A stretch of DNA of 64,000 nt from Perkinsela sp. CCAP 1560/9 (taxonomy: Eukaryota > Protista > Euglenozoa: Kinetoplastea). The stretch covers positions 496,001-560,000 of the forward strand of contig CBFFSA010000010.1 of the NCBI GenBank assembly GCA_965644495.1. The letters are read 5' to 3'. A model generated the notes under the pieces. It was given only the letters and a program-made list of their open reading frames with translations. It did not search any database and was not told the origin of the DNA. A program made the translations under genes and the position numbers. Below, piece after piece: positions 2,719 through 22,686 of this stretch. Every line of letters begins with the position of its first letter. The stretch's first letter is position 1.

Positions 2719-2980
2719 TGCACCCGCCCATCATCATACACCAACCAATTTGTTTTTGAGAAATTCAAAGTACTTTTCTACGATTGATTAGTGAATACAA
2801 TTCCTGTACGCATTCATTTCATAAATGGAGTCTGTGCAGTCAGCGCGTGACGTTTCGTGACGCTTCGTGACGTTTCGTGACAGCCAAGATCGAGGTTTAC
2901 TTGGTGCCTGGCTTGGTGCTTGTCAGTGCCGAGCGCCTCAATCATTCAAGATCCATTTCCCTGATTTGCGGTGATACAAC

Positions 2981-3080
2981 AACCCAGGATAAAGTGGACG
3001 AGGGAGATACCAATAGTGTAGGTGCGGCAGTTTCCCACAAGAAAAACGCCATCTCCACTTTTTTAGTCACCTGTCATGCC
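2981..3080. repeat. One arm plus loop of the GGGAGATAC hairpin module
   Basis: Reverse-complement match to 60718-60819. Confidence 0.8.
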
Positions 3081-3489
3081 TCGGAACCTATAAATCTGTC
3101 TCTGAAGGGTCTGGCTTGCCATCGGCGATGCGCAGCAGTCCCGAATGACTTGGATTCTCAGGATTTTGGTCTGGCTTGCCAGTGGCCGTCGTCCATGGTG
3201 ATGTACGTAATCCATGGTGATATCGGCTTCTGTACCATAATGCGCTACATTACAATACAATACATCGTATTAATCGAGCGCGCCTTGTGGGTCATCAAAT
3301 AAGGCACTCAGAAATCTACCGCTCTCTAGTAAGATGGGGCTCCCGGGAAAAAGCGAGATTTCCATCGCCTTCCGATGCATGCGTACTTCGATATCCAATC
3401 CCGCCTCTCGAATTGTTTGTTCATACTATTGCATAATAGCAGAGAGTTTTCAGGGTAAGGCCCTCATACAACGGGATAACCCTTTTTAT

Positions 3490-6400
3490 TTAGCAAGCAG
3501 AGCGGTTTTCCTCGTCCGTCCATTCAGCTTCGTTCCTCCGAGCCCAAATAATATAGCTGGCCCGACCAGCCATTAAACTCATGCTTTCTCTGCATGATCT
3601 GGCTCGTTTTCGTTCCCCATGGAACACGGCGTCAAGATAGCGACAGGATCCGCTAGGAAGTCCCCGTGCGCCGATCTCGAACGCTAGGGCATAGCAGTTC
3701 GGGTTCTCGATTCTGCGCTCGTGGAGAAGTGAGTTATACTTCTCTGACTTCCGCCGGTGTGCGTTTTCACAGTTCTCCTCCCACGGGACAGTTAGCTCAA
3801 TGATGAACTCGGTCCCGTTCCGTAGTTTGATCCAGCCATACGGGCGCAGTAAACTGTCGCTACTGGTGTACCACGGGAGTGGGTTCCGTTCACCCGTGAG
3901 GTCAAAGTAGCAAGCTTCGGTGGCAGGGGATTGGCGTACGTGTCGTGCGAACTCGCGGAGAACCATGTCGTGTCTGAGTGTGTACCTCCCTTGTTGTAAG
4001 GATGTGTTGCATGATGAAAGGACGTGTCTTGTTGTTTGTATCAGAGTGATAGTTGCGACCCCATTGTACAAGGGATACTCGGGAGGGCAGGGGGGTTAGA
4101 GTCATGACGGAGGACATGAATCGCGAGAGTTTCTCGTTTCGGATCCCATGGATGGCAGATGCAAATTCTTGTGCCATTTCTGGGTCTGACGGAAACTGCC
4201 ACCAGAGGGCAGCAACAGGAGCACGTTGTCGTAGACGTGTAATCATTTGTTCTTCGTGGGCATCACGGAGTATTTGTCGTGCGCGCTGTGGGTCGTTAAG
4301 ATGATCGGTTATTTGTGCAGCTAGGCGGATTTGACCTTTCGCACGCTTCCTTTGCTCTTCCTGGATGCGGAAGCGCAATGCCTTGAGCACGTTCGGGTCT
4401 CGTGATTGATGCATTTGGGTAAGTGACGTTCCGGTGCACTCGTACCAGAGTTGTGTCAGACTTTTGAGATTCCAGCCGCGGCAGGAGTATAGTACTTCTG
4501 TGCTACCGGCACGAGCCATGTTAATCCATCGTCGAATGTGTGCTGTGACTCGCTTCTGAAGCCGCAGAACTGAGCTGAAAGAGATGCAGGGGTGGATGGT
4601 AAACTGAAACCGAAGTCGGGAAATTATAGCGTGTCTGTAGATCCACAGCTTAGCCGAGAGATTATAGGCGCTGGCACTCGTGTTTTCGAGCCATCCCTTC
4701 AGCTTTGAGTTTAATTTCTTGAAAAGTTCGTTTAGCTGCTGAGATCCAGGGGCGAGGGTCATACCAAGAAATGAGCTTCCGGCGTCACAAATATGTGGAA
4801 TTTTTTCTCCGTATGTGGTTACTGTAGGTCTTCTCGTCATGTACCCCGGGTGCTCTTCGCCTTTCCGCGTGCTCATACATTGGACTCGACTTTTTGTGAC
4901 GTTGATTTTTAATCCGATTTTGGAGAACACCGTGGTTAGTGCGTTCAGCGAAGTTTGCATGTCACGGTTACTTTCGGTCAGAATGGTTAAATCATCGGCA
5001 TACGCTTTCAAGAAGTTGTTATCGCCGTTGGGAAGGCGCATGCCAAAGGTTGGACACGAGAACCGAACGTATCGTAATACGATTTCCATGACTACTAAGA
5101 ATATAGTGGTGGAGAGTGTATCGCCTTGTAAGACTCCCTTCTTTACATGTATGGGACGCGTTAGACCTTCGTAACATTTAACTCGTATATGTGCATCAGT
5201 GAGGCTGTCTTTGATGTAGTCGACAACGTTGCAGGGTATGCCTGCCCAACCTAGGGAAGCTAGTATAATGTTATGCGGGATCGAACCAAAGGCGTTAGTG
5301 AGGTCCAATTGGGCAAGACAGTACTGTCGTTTATGTCGCTGGTAGTGCTGGAGGAGGGTGCATAGAGTTTGGGTGTGCTCCAATGTCCCATTGATTTCGG
5401 GAAGAAACCCTTTCTGTATTTTCGGGTCAATCACATTGTGTCGAATAAGATGTTGGGTCAGGCGATGCGATATGATTGTGTGGAACGCTTTACCAAGGGC
5501 GCTCGTCAGTGAAATGGGGCGCCAATTTTTGGGGTTTTCCGGTGCTCCGTTCTTACATTGTATCACCGTTCTTGTATGTATCAGCCTAGTGATTGCAGTT
5601 TTCCATGATGGAGGGCAGGTCGAGAAAGTCATCAGATTATTGAATACCTTAGCAAATTGATCATGCATGAATGGACATTTCTTAAGAATCAGATTGGTGA
5701 TCGTGTCTGCACCGGGTGAGCTGGAGTTCCGTTTCATATTGATGGCTGCTGTGACATCGTCTCGCGTGATTGGGTCCCAATGCATGGGTTGGGCGGCTCC
5801 TGGTCCGAGTACATCTGGAGGAGGCAGTTGGAAGAGTTCTTCACTGGGTTTAAAGCTTGACTCGAAGTATGTCTCTATGGTGTTCCGGTCGCAGGTCGGG
5901 TAAGTTGTATTCTGTACTTCATTAGCGTCAGGTTTGTCGATCGTTTCTGAAGCTGCTGTCCACGGATTTCTGGAAAATCGCTCGGAGGCCCAGCGCTGAT
6001 CGATTTCTTCTCTTTGTTTCGTCGCTTCTTCCTCACGTATCCTGACTAGCTTCCGACATTCTTTGATTTGTGCTCGTAATTCGTCTCGTTCCGTCCTACT
6101 TCTCGTATAGCGTAGCGAAGTTTTCAAGGTTGTGAGATGGTGTTTCAGTTCTTGTGCGACTCTCTCCGTGGCGAGTGGTCGATACCATCGTCGGGCGTGT
6201 CCGGTGCTAGCTCTGATGAGGAAGCCCCTTGTCGGATTCGCTTCCGTCGCTATTTCGTAAGCAGATACGGCTAGGGCGGCGCTAAGAAGTTCTGCGTTAC
6301 GTATAGCTGTCTTCCTGTCCGTTGTATCGCTTAGAAGTTCGTTGCAACGTGCACTTGCTCTCGCTTCAACCTGTCGCCATTGCTCTTCGCTGAGTCGTAT

Positions 6401-8527
6401 GGTAACCTTCCCGCCAAGTATTGCATTGTGCTTTTGCAGGAGTTCTACTGCTTTTTGACTTTGAGAGGCGTCAGATTGCACTGTCGGCGTGGAGGGTTCA
6501 ACTTGGGAATGTATGTTACTGGGTACTGTTGTTGGGGATTCACAGCCGGTTTCGTTCCCTGGTGCATAGAGTGGCCCAAATACTTTGCAACATAGGTGTG
6601 CGCACTCAAGTTTGTTTCGACACGTGTGGCGGCATGGCTGTACAGTGCGCAGTGTCGGTGCACTACGGTTCTGTTGAATGCGATTCGGTGATGCTTCTCT
6701 GCGTGAGATACGTTCGTAACTGACTTCTTCCGCTTCCTCCAGTCTTCGATGTACTGTAATGCGTAGATGTCTGAGATGTGGTATATCCATTCCGTTAAGC
6801 GCCTTCATGACTGCGCGGCCTAGTGCTCCCGCTGTTGCATACTTCTCGTTGAGTTTAAGTGTATTATCTTGGAGAAGGGATGTCCAGCTGGCATGCCGAC
6901 TGATGTGTTGACTATTTTGTTCTTCGATATGTATGTAGTCGCATCCGCGGTGGTCCATGAGTTCTTCAGTTGTGGAAGGCTCGACAACCAAGTCATGAGA
7001 GTTGCTTTTACCAGACAACATTTTCGAGAGTGCCGCTTGTGCTGCTTGGAGAGAGGGTATTCTAGCCCGGACGAGAGGAGATTCGCTGGCATTTCGAATA
7101 TCTGGAAAGTATGTCCAGATCAGGTTTGCTACTGTTCGCACTTTCACGGGGCGGGCTCTGCTCTGGACAAAGTGAAGGTATTGCTTTTGCCGTGGTTCAT
7201 GGTTTGTGTCAGGTGGTGCGGATTCGTCCCGGTTCTGTGTCGCGCTGCTTTGAAATACCCAGCCAGGGACTTCATCGTTTTCTCCTTCCTGTTCCCTGGG
7301 ACAAGGCATGATTAATTCTTGCTTTTCCGTCAGCTTTTCCACCTCGTACATCTCATTGTGGTTAAGCGTGACTGTTGGGTTTGCTGGTAAATAGGGATTG
7401 CTTTCTTTCTCGACCGCAGTCGTGAATGGCTGGGATGATGTGCATAGTTTCGTGGGACTTGCGGTTGCGGGTTCTGGTTTTCCGTCATTTTGTGGCATAG
7501 TGTCTACTTGTATATAGAAAAACCTGATATACCAGAGAATTATTCGTTGTGCAAGTTTCATGATTTCAAGAGCGGTCATGCTCAGTGGTTGCTTTTTCAA
7601 CCGCGCGACGTTTGAACAAAATTTCTCGTGCATTATTCGTATCCGGGGCAGTAAAAGCAGAGGCGATGGGAAAATGTCATACGTTTTTCTGCAAGAAGAA
7701 GTAATGAACCTGATGGTACTACCTATGCACACATATACCATGTTCATACATTGGACAATGTGTAATGGGTTTGCTGCTTCAGAAAGCCAACCAGTTAATA
7801 GGGACAATAGGGTTTGAGTGTTCCTTGTGATGACTAGTAGTACGTGACCAAAGGGTCCATTGTTTGTTGGCACCACATTTATGACTTTCTTCTGGGAGTG
7901 TCGTATATGACGTTTGCAACAAGGGTGTTTGCAGGTGACTTTGTTCAGACAGATGTGCCTACACGGTTTTGTCGTGATACTTTGTGTGCCAACATTTCGA
8001 CGGAAAGGATTGAGGGCGTTGGGTGACGGGATTGCGCGGATGGGTGCTACTAGGAGGTGAACGGCGAGGCTAGATATCCATCTGAAGACGTTAGATATGA
8101 TGATGCCAATATTCCGCATGTTGTAGAGAGTTCTGAATACTAGTATAATTGATCGGGCCATGGCAAGCGGGGAGACTTCAAAATTCCTTCGTTTCTTTGA
8201 CATGACGGTATGTGATGTTACGGTGTCGCTATCCGTTATACTTTGCGCAGTTAAGTGACGCTTGCAGCACAAGTGTAAGCATTCACGTTTATTCAGACAC
8301 TTGTGCTTACAGGGTTCCGCTGGGGACGATGCGGTGGTATTCGCCGAATTGCCAGTCACATGCTCGGTTTGCGTGACGTTTAGCAGATTGTCGGGAGTAC
8401 TTCCGTTCTCGTTGGAAGAGGCGTCAGGATGGGTGGGAGTTGCGCTTTGCTTGCGAACGCCGCGTGGTCCTCGTGTAAGGTCCTGCAGCGCATTCGAGTG
8501 AGATCGTTGCGCGCGGTGTCGCGCCAT
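3490..8527 (-). pseudogene. Non-LTR retrotransposon polyprotein (RT + zinc knuckle + restriction-like endonuclease), HERO/NeSL-like, frameshifted
   Basis: WRPISL, QKGF..GTLEH, LDLTNAFGSIPH, GVLQGDTLS and YADD in the 3902-8527 ORF; HVLSSC..GRYTLRHD, ELTVPWEE, KY and EIGARG in the 3490-4071 ORF. A frameshift near 4040 removes the CxxC, and the catalytic RPD reads RPY. Confidence 0.92.
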
Positions 8528-8564
8528 GTAGATTTAAACGATAAAGAAATAAATCAACAAGGTA

Positions 8565-8599
8565 CAACAAGGTACAGAAACTGTATCTTTGCAGCAAGT
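8565..8599 (-). ncRNA. Spliced-leader-like exon fused to the retroelement 5' UTR
   Basis: The minus strand reads ACTTGCTGCAAAGATACAGTTTCTGTACCTTGTTG, containing the euglenozoan SL core ACAGTTTCTGTAC...TTG. Its last 10 nt are duplicated (8555-8564) and the ATG follows 27 nt later. Confidence 0.7.
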
Positions 8600-9467
8600 C
8601 GGAAGGGAAAGATTCCATAACCTGACTTTGCCCACATGAAAGGCACACTTCGGTACCTTGCAAAACGCCATCTTCAAGGCAGAGAACGCATTTGTCCTGC
8701 TCGTCAGGCGTCGGACACTATTTTACAATATACACGAAAGGCTAGAGGATTAAGGTGTACGATTGTGAAGGGAGTCAAGCTCTTGCAATTTCCGTGGCAC
8801 TGCTGCCGATGAACAGACGATTGCAGTCACATTGAAATGAGTACATGTAATCAAGTTTCCTTCCAAAACAATGTTAAGAAAGCTCGAAAAAGTAAGATAA
8901 TGTGGCTGCGCGTGACGTTCGTGACGGCCAAGACTTGCACAGACTCCAATGTTTAGCTATCAATAATCTGAAAACAATGTTCTTTTTAAACCATTTGATC
9001 AGAATTTTTTTCATTTATATTGTCACTCGTATCAATATTACCAGTACACTGTCGACACTACCCGCTGTACACTGTTGATACTTTCTATTGACAACTTTTG
9101 CATTTTACATATTGATAACTCAGAAGTGAGTATTCCTATTTCATCCGTCGTGTTTTCAAGTCATTATCCAAGGATTTCCACACCTTGCAACCTCCAGGAC
9201 TAAGAACATGCTACAAGTCCCATGGCATTAAAGTTTAATGAACAGAATGAGATTTAATAAACAGATGGAGAATTTTTAAAAGTCAGCTAGTTGTGCTCGT
9301 TCTCTAAAAAGAACGCACGATCAAAAACCCTTTTTCATAAGCTACAGTGCTAAGTCACAGTTCAGTGAAAACGCTGACCACTTGGAAAAGTCAGAGGTGC
9401 AGCAACACGAATTACAAAAGATTCTACATGCAACATTGCCAAGCCTGGTATCCGCCTTTGTGGACTA

Positions 9468-21228: not shown

Positions 21229-22686
21229 TTAACCCTTCCATGTTATGTTAGGGGAACGTAACACTTCGATGTTATGTACCATGAGAGCGCACGAAAAGGC
21301 GTAGTAAAGAAAATCTGGACTACGAGTCCACTGTTTAAAAGCGAGCCATTTGCCGCAGCACGAACGAGAAAAAATGTGTTCGACCCGCGCTCTAAAGTGA
21401 GCCAACTTCTCATTGAAGTACATTTTACTCTCTGCTTCTGAATCATGATGTTTTTGCGTAGACTTAGATTTTGTTCGCTTCGAACAACAAACTTTGGCTT
21501 TAGAATGGGGTACCATTAGTCTATATCGGTAAGACTGCCGTTAAATTCCCCATCAGCAAGAGCGCGAAGATGATTACGTCCCAGAAAATCTAAAATACCA
21601 CTACAGTTATTAATAACGGCGTCGGATGAGGCTCCACAGTGCAATGTGTCTGTTGTGAAGCAAACGTGTCCAGACATTGTACATGCTACAAGAGCTTTCA
21701 CAACATGTGTAGCATATTTTGGCTGATAGCAGTGAGGCAAGCTATCAACGTGCAGTGGCACTGTGTCCATCACCACGTTTATATCCTTATCCTAAAAGGA
21801 AGAACTGTGTTTGATTCATGGTGTAAAATATCAGAATCCAAAGCCATGTATCCTTCACATCGGAATGCAGGTTTTCAAGAAGCTCGGGTCTTTGTTGTTC
21901 TTGTCAGAACAAGAACATTGAGACCAACCGGTTCCAAATTTCAAGGACACGAGTTCTGATATAATGTCTTAGCTACCACCACTGCAAAAAATGAAAACTC
22001 GCAAAAATTTCTTCAAAGGGATAATGGAGTTTAAAAAAGGTGAGAGCGCGATGTCTTGAACCGCGTAAGGACAACTCGGAATATCCCTACTCGGACGTAG
22101 GGAGCATCAGGTGTATCGCGGGGTATATCTGGTTGTGCGTCACAGATTTCAGATGTTTTAAGGGGTGTGTCAGAGGTGTATTCCCGGGTTTCAATACGGC
22201 CAAGCTTCAGTATCAAGCAGAGGAAAGATTATGACGATTTTATTACAGGAAAGAAAGATATATTAAATAAATTCTTTGGTTTACGGAACTCTTAATTTTC
22301 ATAATTTTGCTTGTGCTTTCGAATCCCTTTTTGAGAATCCGCAGTTGAACAAGCTCATCCCGGATAGAAAGAAGTTCAGTAGGATCATTCTCCATTGAAT
22401 TACCAAGTTTGTCCATGATCTCACCCTGAACATGCTGAACAAACTTTTGATCAATTTCAAATATTGAGTCACCTAGAACCAACAAAAGCTTCCTACCAGC
22501 GCAGTCTTTGTGGTCTAGGGTGTTGGCCGAAAGTCGTTTTCCATCTTGAGGAGAATTGCACAACGGACAGTAGTTTGAACCTATGAGGACTGAAACCCTG
22601 TGACACTGAATACAAGGGTCCTTTACTGCGCATTCGATGGGGCACTGCGGCATACGGTAGCTGGGCAAAGGTTGGGTGGACAACAA
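21229..22686 (-). pseudogene. PIF/Harbinger-ISL2EU (DDE_Tnp_4-type) transposase remnant with an upstream Cys-rich ORF
   Basis: YQPKYATHVVKALVACTMSG...GASSD...ALADGEF and FNEKLAHFRARVEHIF in broken frames. Confidence 0.7.

Follow-up and report, generated by a model that had tools for sequence, protein, structure and literature searches.

Positions 2824 to 8950 of a 64,000-nucleotide stretch of the genome of the kinetoplastid Perkinsela sp. CCAP 1560/9 (contig CBFFSA010000010.1, positions 496,001 to 560,000; hereafter the window) hold a non-long-terminal-repeat (non-LTR) retrotransposon, with reverse transcriptase (RT) and restriction-enzyme-like endonuclease (REL), between terminal inverted repeats (TIRs) of a kind that belongs to DNA transposons. 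Two unrelated elements are very probably stacked here by independent insertions: a young R2-like long interspersed nuclear element (LINE) lies inside an older, gutted PIF/Harbinger-type transposon, which we call the shell. The preliminary description of this DNA had reported TIRs and a 3-bp duplication of the target site (TSD) enclosing an RT/REL element, and these were found; all the end features that it named were present, although its title range set the right arm and the right AAT 1 to 2 nt too far to the right. The features are as follows.

2824-2826: left copy of the shell TSD, AAT, matching 8948-8950
2827-2838, + strand: shell TIR at the 'A' end, GGAGTCTGTGCA
2827-3412, - strand: A-side half (586 bp) of the shell, a non-autonomous element of Harbinger type, by homology to the empty shells L035 and L036
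2843-2889, + strand: A-end subterminal array of four CGTGAC units at exact 10-bp spacing, with CCAAGA at its end
3413-8586, - strand: R2-like RT+REL non-LTR retrotransposon, delimited by homology to L006 and L007 and by breaks in Logan contigs
3490-4071, - strand: remainder of the REL domain, shifted to a different frame, with 96% identity to aa 1500-1616 of L006
3902-8527, - strand: LINE open frame of 1541 aa, shortened by a frameshift, with RVT_1 at aa 998-1217
4034-4040, - strand: point at which 29 bp present in L006 and L007 are deleted, between ACAAA repeats
8555-8590, - strand: spliced-leader relic (AAAG)ATACAGTTTCTGTACCTTGTTG, then a 10-nt duplicate, TACCTTGTTG
8587-8947, - strand: B-side half of the shell, 361 bp, by homology to L035 and L036
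8589-8826, - strand: Cys-rich relic of open reading frame 1 (ORF1), cut by the LINE; 72% amino acid identity over 53 aa to family-2 ORF1 (aa 45-95), E 8e-18
8908-8933, + strand: B-end subterminal array of two CGTGAC units and CCAAGA, sharing its strand with the A-end array
8936-8947, - strand: shell TIR at the 'B' end, exact reverse complement of GGAGTCTGTGCA
8948-8950: right copy of the shell TSD, AAT

Limits of the shell and of the LINE

The two TIR arms were complementary at all positions (12/12), and at no more than one mismatch the 12-mer occurred twice in the window, against 0.15 occurrences expected by chance. In the genome searched (21 Mb, 110 contigs), the TIR had 12 exact copies, 9 of which were element ends. 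The other three (C1:293521; C1:2079194, near another LINE; and C11:487061) carried no arrays and were set aside as chance matches, in keeping with an expectation of about 2.5. Same-strand direct repeats inside both ends, with additional 10-bp units in the left copy, had also been described and were confirmed: GCGCGTGACGTT stands at 2843-2854 and 8908-8919, the left copy being prolonged by CGTGACGYTT units at exact 10-bp spacing. The genome search proposed at the time returned the same structure on C1 and C51, and the combination of TIR and arrays is therefore not due to chance.

Without the LINE the shell measures 947 bp and is a non-autonomous DNA transposon, with no transposase in the window copy. 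Uninterrupted shells were present on C1, as a complete element of 1161 bp flanked by TAT/TAT (L035 2626-3786), and on C51, as a partial one (L036), and both were continuous across the point of LINE insertion (...GCTGCAAAG-TC-TTCGAGAGG...). In the window the LINE is flanked by AAAG and TTCGAG; the TC of the empty site is missing (2 to 3 target bases lost), and there is no target duplication. AAAG is common to the shell target and the spliced leader, which gives a 4-nt microhomology join at the 5' end of the LINE, with the junction inside 8587-8590. The 3' end, ...GAACAAACAA at position 3413, is common to the copies. The ORF1 relic that the LINE interrupts has the same orientation as the LINE.

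At least 30 related RT loci were present in the genome. Two of them were close siblings of the window LINE, at about 98% identity: L006 (C9:675947), 98.5% identical over 4532 bp, and L007 (C9:366127), which was 5' truncated. Both matched the window only from 3413 to about 8567; their flanks were related neither to the window nor to one another, and neither copy was surrounded by a shell. The RT and REL assigned in the preliminary description were both recovered, the former as RVT_1 (E 4.5e-28), the latter through L006, whose ORF of 1617 aa has a C terminus that aligned with Bombyx R2 over the zinc knuckle and the PD-(D/E)xK nuclease; overall, R2Bm was the best solved relative (PDB 8gh6; E 1e-28). 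Through the 29-bp deletion in the window copy, the REL zinc knuckle has lost its CxxC and the frame is shifted. L006 lacks about 196 bp near the end of its ORF and L007 is truncated, and all three copies are thus incomplete. A protein homologue search with the LINE returned relatives without names and distant proteins named after R2, and none named SLACS or CZAR.

Two further observations concern the window LINE and its sibling. The N-terminal region (window 6585-8315, - strand) holds three CX3CX6CXHXCC motifs (PCKHKCLNKRECLHLCC and similar), in the position where R2-type elements usually carry C2H2/Myb motifs. At the 5' junction of L006 (1400-1475), TACGAGTGGGATACAG stands twice in tandem, as a repeat of target sequence and leader fragment, which looks like the outcome of template switching during 5' joining.

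The leader 23-mer (AAAG)ATACAGTTTCTGTACCTTGTTG occurred 521 times in the genome, and at other loci the leader was longer (ATAAAGATACAG...). KMP-11 was present as well (E 4e-43), and with the leader core ACAGTTTCTGTAC it identifies the host as kinetoplastid. The empty site of the C1 and C51 shells contains no spliced-leader sequence; the leader piece therefore entered together with the LINE RNA and is part of the RNA that was copied, not of the target. The element had been called driven by the spliced leader (SL), a view that this absence does not support, and an SL promoter at 8587-8670 was likewise argued against, that region being shell sequence. Leader copies at L009, L013, L020, L029, and L042 are followed by GTAC(A/T)TTTT(C/G)C(T)TAG..., the GT at the start of which resembles a splice donor; such copies could represent SL RNA genes in dispersed positions, or else retro-copies of the entire SL RNA, in contrast to leader relics on trans-spliced RNAs.

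Read data were in agreement with these limits. In Logan contigs, in which the region was present in four runs of one study, a contig of 1718 nt spans the 5' junction of the LINE, breaks between contigs fall at 3413 and at about 8553-8562, i.e., at the limits of the LINE, and none of the contigs over the region skips it. No RNA for the region was found in the Logan read data, and an Rfam scan of the window at the gathering threshold gave no match.

Order of insertion and alternative readings

Divergence is 7 to 16% among shell copies and 1.5% between the LINE and its sibling; the LINE is thus likely to have arrived after the shell. We propose that a PIF/Harbinger-type cut-and-paste element, or an internally deleted derivative moved in trans, first integrated at an AAT and duplicated it. 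An R2-like LINE would later have inserted into the ORF1 relic of the shell, presumably by target-primed reverse transcription of an RNA that had already been trans-spliced, so that the host spliced leader was carried along; its 5' end would have been joined through AAAG with the small loss of target noted above and no duplication. This copy would then have lost 29 bp in the zinc knuckle of its endonuclease.

Several points weigh against this history or parts of it. The shell family is represented by three copies only (window, C1, and C51), so the age argument draws on few sequences. A paralogous empty site for the shell itself was searched for and not found. Over the LINE body, the Logan contigs merge its paralogues and carry the 29 nt absent from the window copy; because of this collapse, they do not confirm the deletion, and they leave room for an allele with an empty shell. 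The shell interior, furthermore, is a mosaic. A block of about 355 bp in the C1 shell (L035 2839-3193) and in L036 is absent from the window (at about 8784-8786), either as a further small nested element or through a deletion in the window copy, and a block of 158 bp (window 3229-3386), beginning 26 nt from the point of LINE insertion, has 91% identity to 12 dispersed copies. As separate observations, the 355-bp block is itself repeated at C11:489379, C1:3443619, C11:426105, and C4:282516, and many copies of the 158-bp block lie on small contigs (C102, C65, C56, C28, C22, C52, C34, C8, and others). Finally, the role given below to the subterminal arrays is drawn by analogy with another Harbinger element.

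Three other readings were considered. Insertion of the LINE into the ORF1 region might have been targeted and not random, through a sequence preference or because transposon DNA serves as a safe haven. The shared orientation of the LINE and the ORF1 relic is what such targeting could produce, but three copies of the LINE family lie at three unrelated sequences and one event is insufficient to show a preference, so that we regard targeting as very unlikely.

The preliminary description had offered, as its first interpretation, a DNA transposon shell with PIF/Harbinger-like ends and the retroelement as cargo. The Harbinger-like shell holding a LINE stands, given its 3-bp TSDs, its ORF1 relic, and the DDE_Tnp_4 transposase of a sister family (see below). 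The further step, by which shell and LINE would move together as one DNA transposon, did not find support. With two perfect TIRs, an intact TSD, and an array at each end, the 6.1-kb unit is formally a substrate. However, it is the single composite in the genome: filled shells with different 3-bp duplications had been expected under this interpretation, and no second one was found; the other shells are empty, and the close LINE copies, whose flanks had been singled out for comparison, are unshelled. Nor was an open transposase frame seen in the TIR clade. We therefore consider a mobile composite very unlikely. The nest gives no sign of working as a unit and, since no open transposase frame of the clade was seen, we think that the composite, its ends intact, is immobile now.

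The second interpretation, a LINE that targets a tiny hairpin miniature inverted-repeat transposable element (MITE) and leaves a target duplication of about 27 bp, can be set aside almost with certainty: deletion of everything between the direct repeats does leave a 56-bp palindrome-ended unit, but this unit is an exercise in arithmetic and occurs nowhere in the genome (among 95 TIR sites with no more than one mismatch, no +/- pair was closer than about 550 bp), the shell measures about 950 to 1160 bp, the true insertion point lies 361 and 586 bp from its ends in sequence that is continuous in empty shells and is not duplicated, and the supposed duplication consists of arrays with variable unit number that are present in all members, LINE-less elements included.

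The clade of the shell

The TIR GGAG(T/A)CTGTGCA was common to six complete elements of three families, the shell belonging to family 1. Family 2 has a 1350-bp element on C6 (L045) with the TIR of this clade, and family 3 (L046, L047, and L048; 1.8 to 2.5 kb) has the TIR GGAGACTGTGCA. The 3-bp TSDs of the six elements were all different (AAT, TAT, CAT, ATT, AAG, and ATG), and none of the six (0/6) followed the TWA (TAA/TTA) consensus of PIF/Harbinger.

Family 3 encodes a DDE_Tnp_4 transposase (L047; PF13359, E 2.9e-13), which has one in-frame stop in this best copy, and family 2 retains a decayed transposase fragment homologous to it (E 1.7e-12 in L045 and 9e-30 in L051). CGTGAC arrays of family 1 adjoin transposase relics at C7:562158-562403 and C15:185270-185722, as judged from match coordinates. 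Apart from L047 with its stop, the transposases seen in this TIR clade were relics. A protein homologue search with the transposase, limited by its word filter, returned only a fragment nearly identical to the query. At least 60 DDE_Tnp_4 loci were present in the genome, many with open frames of 340 to 430 aa; since no clade TIR lies near these open frames, they belong to families with other ends.

Three side observations were made on transposases. The window itself holds a decayed Harbinger-type transposase relic (21256-21809, - strand), with a stop, at 35 to 42% identity to the family-3 transposase. At C10:709123 and C10:723934, TIR-like 12-mers (GGAGCCTGTGCA and GGAGACTGTGCA, respectively) abut the ends of truncated transposase matches; related transposase genes may have served there as insertion sites for elements of the clade. 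At L050 (3439-6661; C1:3351438-3354660), DDE_3 and HTH_Tnp_Tc3_2 domains occur in open frames at a distance of 3 kb from a Harbinger end of family 2, which indicates that this kinetoplastid genome also has transposases of the Tc1/mariner type.

For comparison of the arrays, the six complete elements were oriented by ORF1. The 'B' end then reads TIR, A(G/A)(T/A)CTTGG, array, and the 'A' end reads array, spacer, inverted TIR. In 6/6 elements all subterminal motif units lay on the same strand at both ends, with none reversed. Spacing was 10 bp in all six, with a sole 9-bp step at the B end of the window shell, and the number of units ranged from 2 to 8 at the B end and from 4 to 7 at the A end. 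The motif itself differed between families: GTCACG in family 1, TTCAC(G/A) in family 2, and TGGCA(T/C) in family 3. Because arrays occur in every member, also in those without a LINE, the direct repeats of the window are subterminal arrays that characterize the family, and they are no target duplication. A 9-bp subterminal motif of Harbinger3_DR is bound by the ORF1 protein of that element (PMC9710019, PMC2836001). By analogy, the ORF1 protein of the present clade presumably binds to the arrays, and their common direction would make the A and B ends non-equivalent.

ORF1 of families 2 and 3 encodes about 240 to 270 aa, precedes the transposase, and contains four CxxC pairs; the two proteins are 49% identical. 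No Pfam domain was found in ORF1, even at E 10, and no Myb/SANT domain was detectable. An exhaustive profile search of 1.84 billion representatives returned only 7 matches, 5 of them (5/7) fragments probably from the same organism. An AlphaFold model of moderate quality (mean pLDDT 61) has a helical core at residues 65 to 225, and a Foldseek search of this model against PDB at E ≤ 0.001 gave no match. On an unrelated ENA contig (L055), an ORF1 homologue of 25% identity is directly followed by a transposase relic 53% identical to that of family 3, and the pairing of ORF1 with transposase is therefore not peculiar to this genome. An RT fragment beside an ORF1 homologue on a metagenome contig (L054) was unrelated to the window LINE.

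We tentatively put forward the possibility that the GGAG(T/A)CTGTGCA clade forms a Harbinger lineage of its own, where an orphan, zinc-ribbon-like ORF1 protein would replace the Myb-like partner and read the 10-bp-phased arrays, these being family specific in sequence and running in one direction at both ends, so that the two ends differ in construction; it might then be the first Harbinger-type group described in Kinetoplastea.

Comparison with known systems

With the PIF/Harbinger superfamily and its non-autonomous derivatives (Ping/Pong/mPing and Tourist-like MITEs), the clade shares short TIRs, 3-bp TSDs, the two-gene layout of ORF1 followed by a DDE_Tnp_4 transposase, the presence of internally deleted non-autonomous copies, and a short motif repeated subterminally. 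It differs from PIF/Harbinger in having an orphan Cys-rich protein without a recognizable Myb/SANT domain as its ORF1 product, in TSDs that are not TWA, in arrays that are phased at 10 bp on one strand at both ends and so give distinct A and B ends, and in its kinetoplastid host.

With R2 and related REL-bearing LINEs (R2Bm; PDB 8gh6), the window LINE shares a single long ORF in which a CCHC knuckle and a PD-(D/E)xK nuclease come after RT, as well as insertion without a TSD and with the loss of few target bases. Unlike R2, its family is not site specific (three copies, three different sites), its N terminus carries the three CX3CX6CXHXCC motifs, and its 5' end carries a relic of the host spliced leader. 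SLACS, CZAR, and CRE are trypanosomatid LINEs specific for spliced-leader genes, with a fixed position inside SL RNA genes. Like them, the window LINE is a kinetoplastid RT+REL LINE physically associated with spliced-leader sequence; in contrast to them, its target holds no such sequence, and the SL piece belongs to the copied RNA. Ordinary nested insertions, in which an older element is interrupted by a younger one and both have siblings of their own at other places, differ from the present case in nothing essential. The nest itself is thus an ordinary one of two known kinds of element; the family of the shell is an unusual Harbinger variant and unusual for a kinetoplastid.

A retroelement with acquired DNA-transposon ends does not hold, and the nest is not to be counted as a new class of element. 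The empty shell proves cleanly that the spliced-leader piece is carried by the LINE RNA and does not mark the target. The nest is also a record of a clade of Harbinger type in a kinetoplastid. Among the DNA transposons of that group, only Merlin is reported in the surveys searched; a 2021 study covering 89 kinetoplastid genomes gave it as the first and only one (PMC8101967). No paper on Harbinger-type elements in kinetoplastids was found in the literature searched, the coverage of which was incomplete. With its unrecognized partner protein and its one-directional arrays at the helical phase, the clade provides a simple system for how a Harbinger transposase finds its ends.

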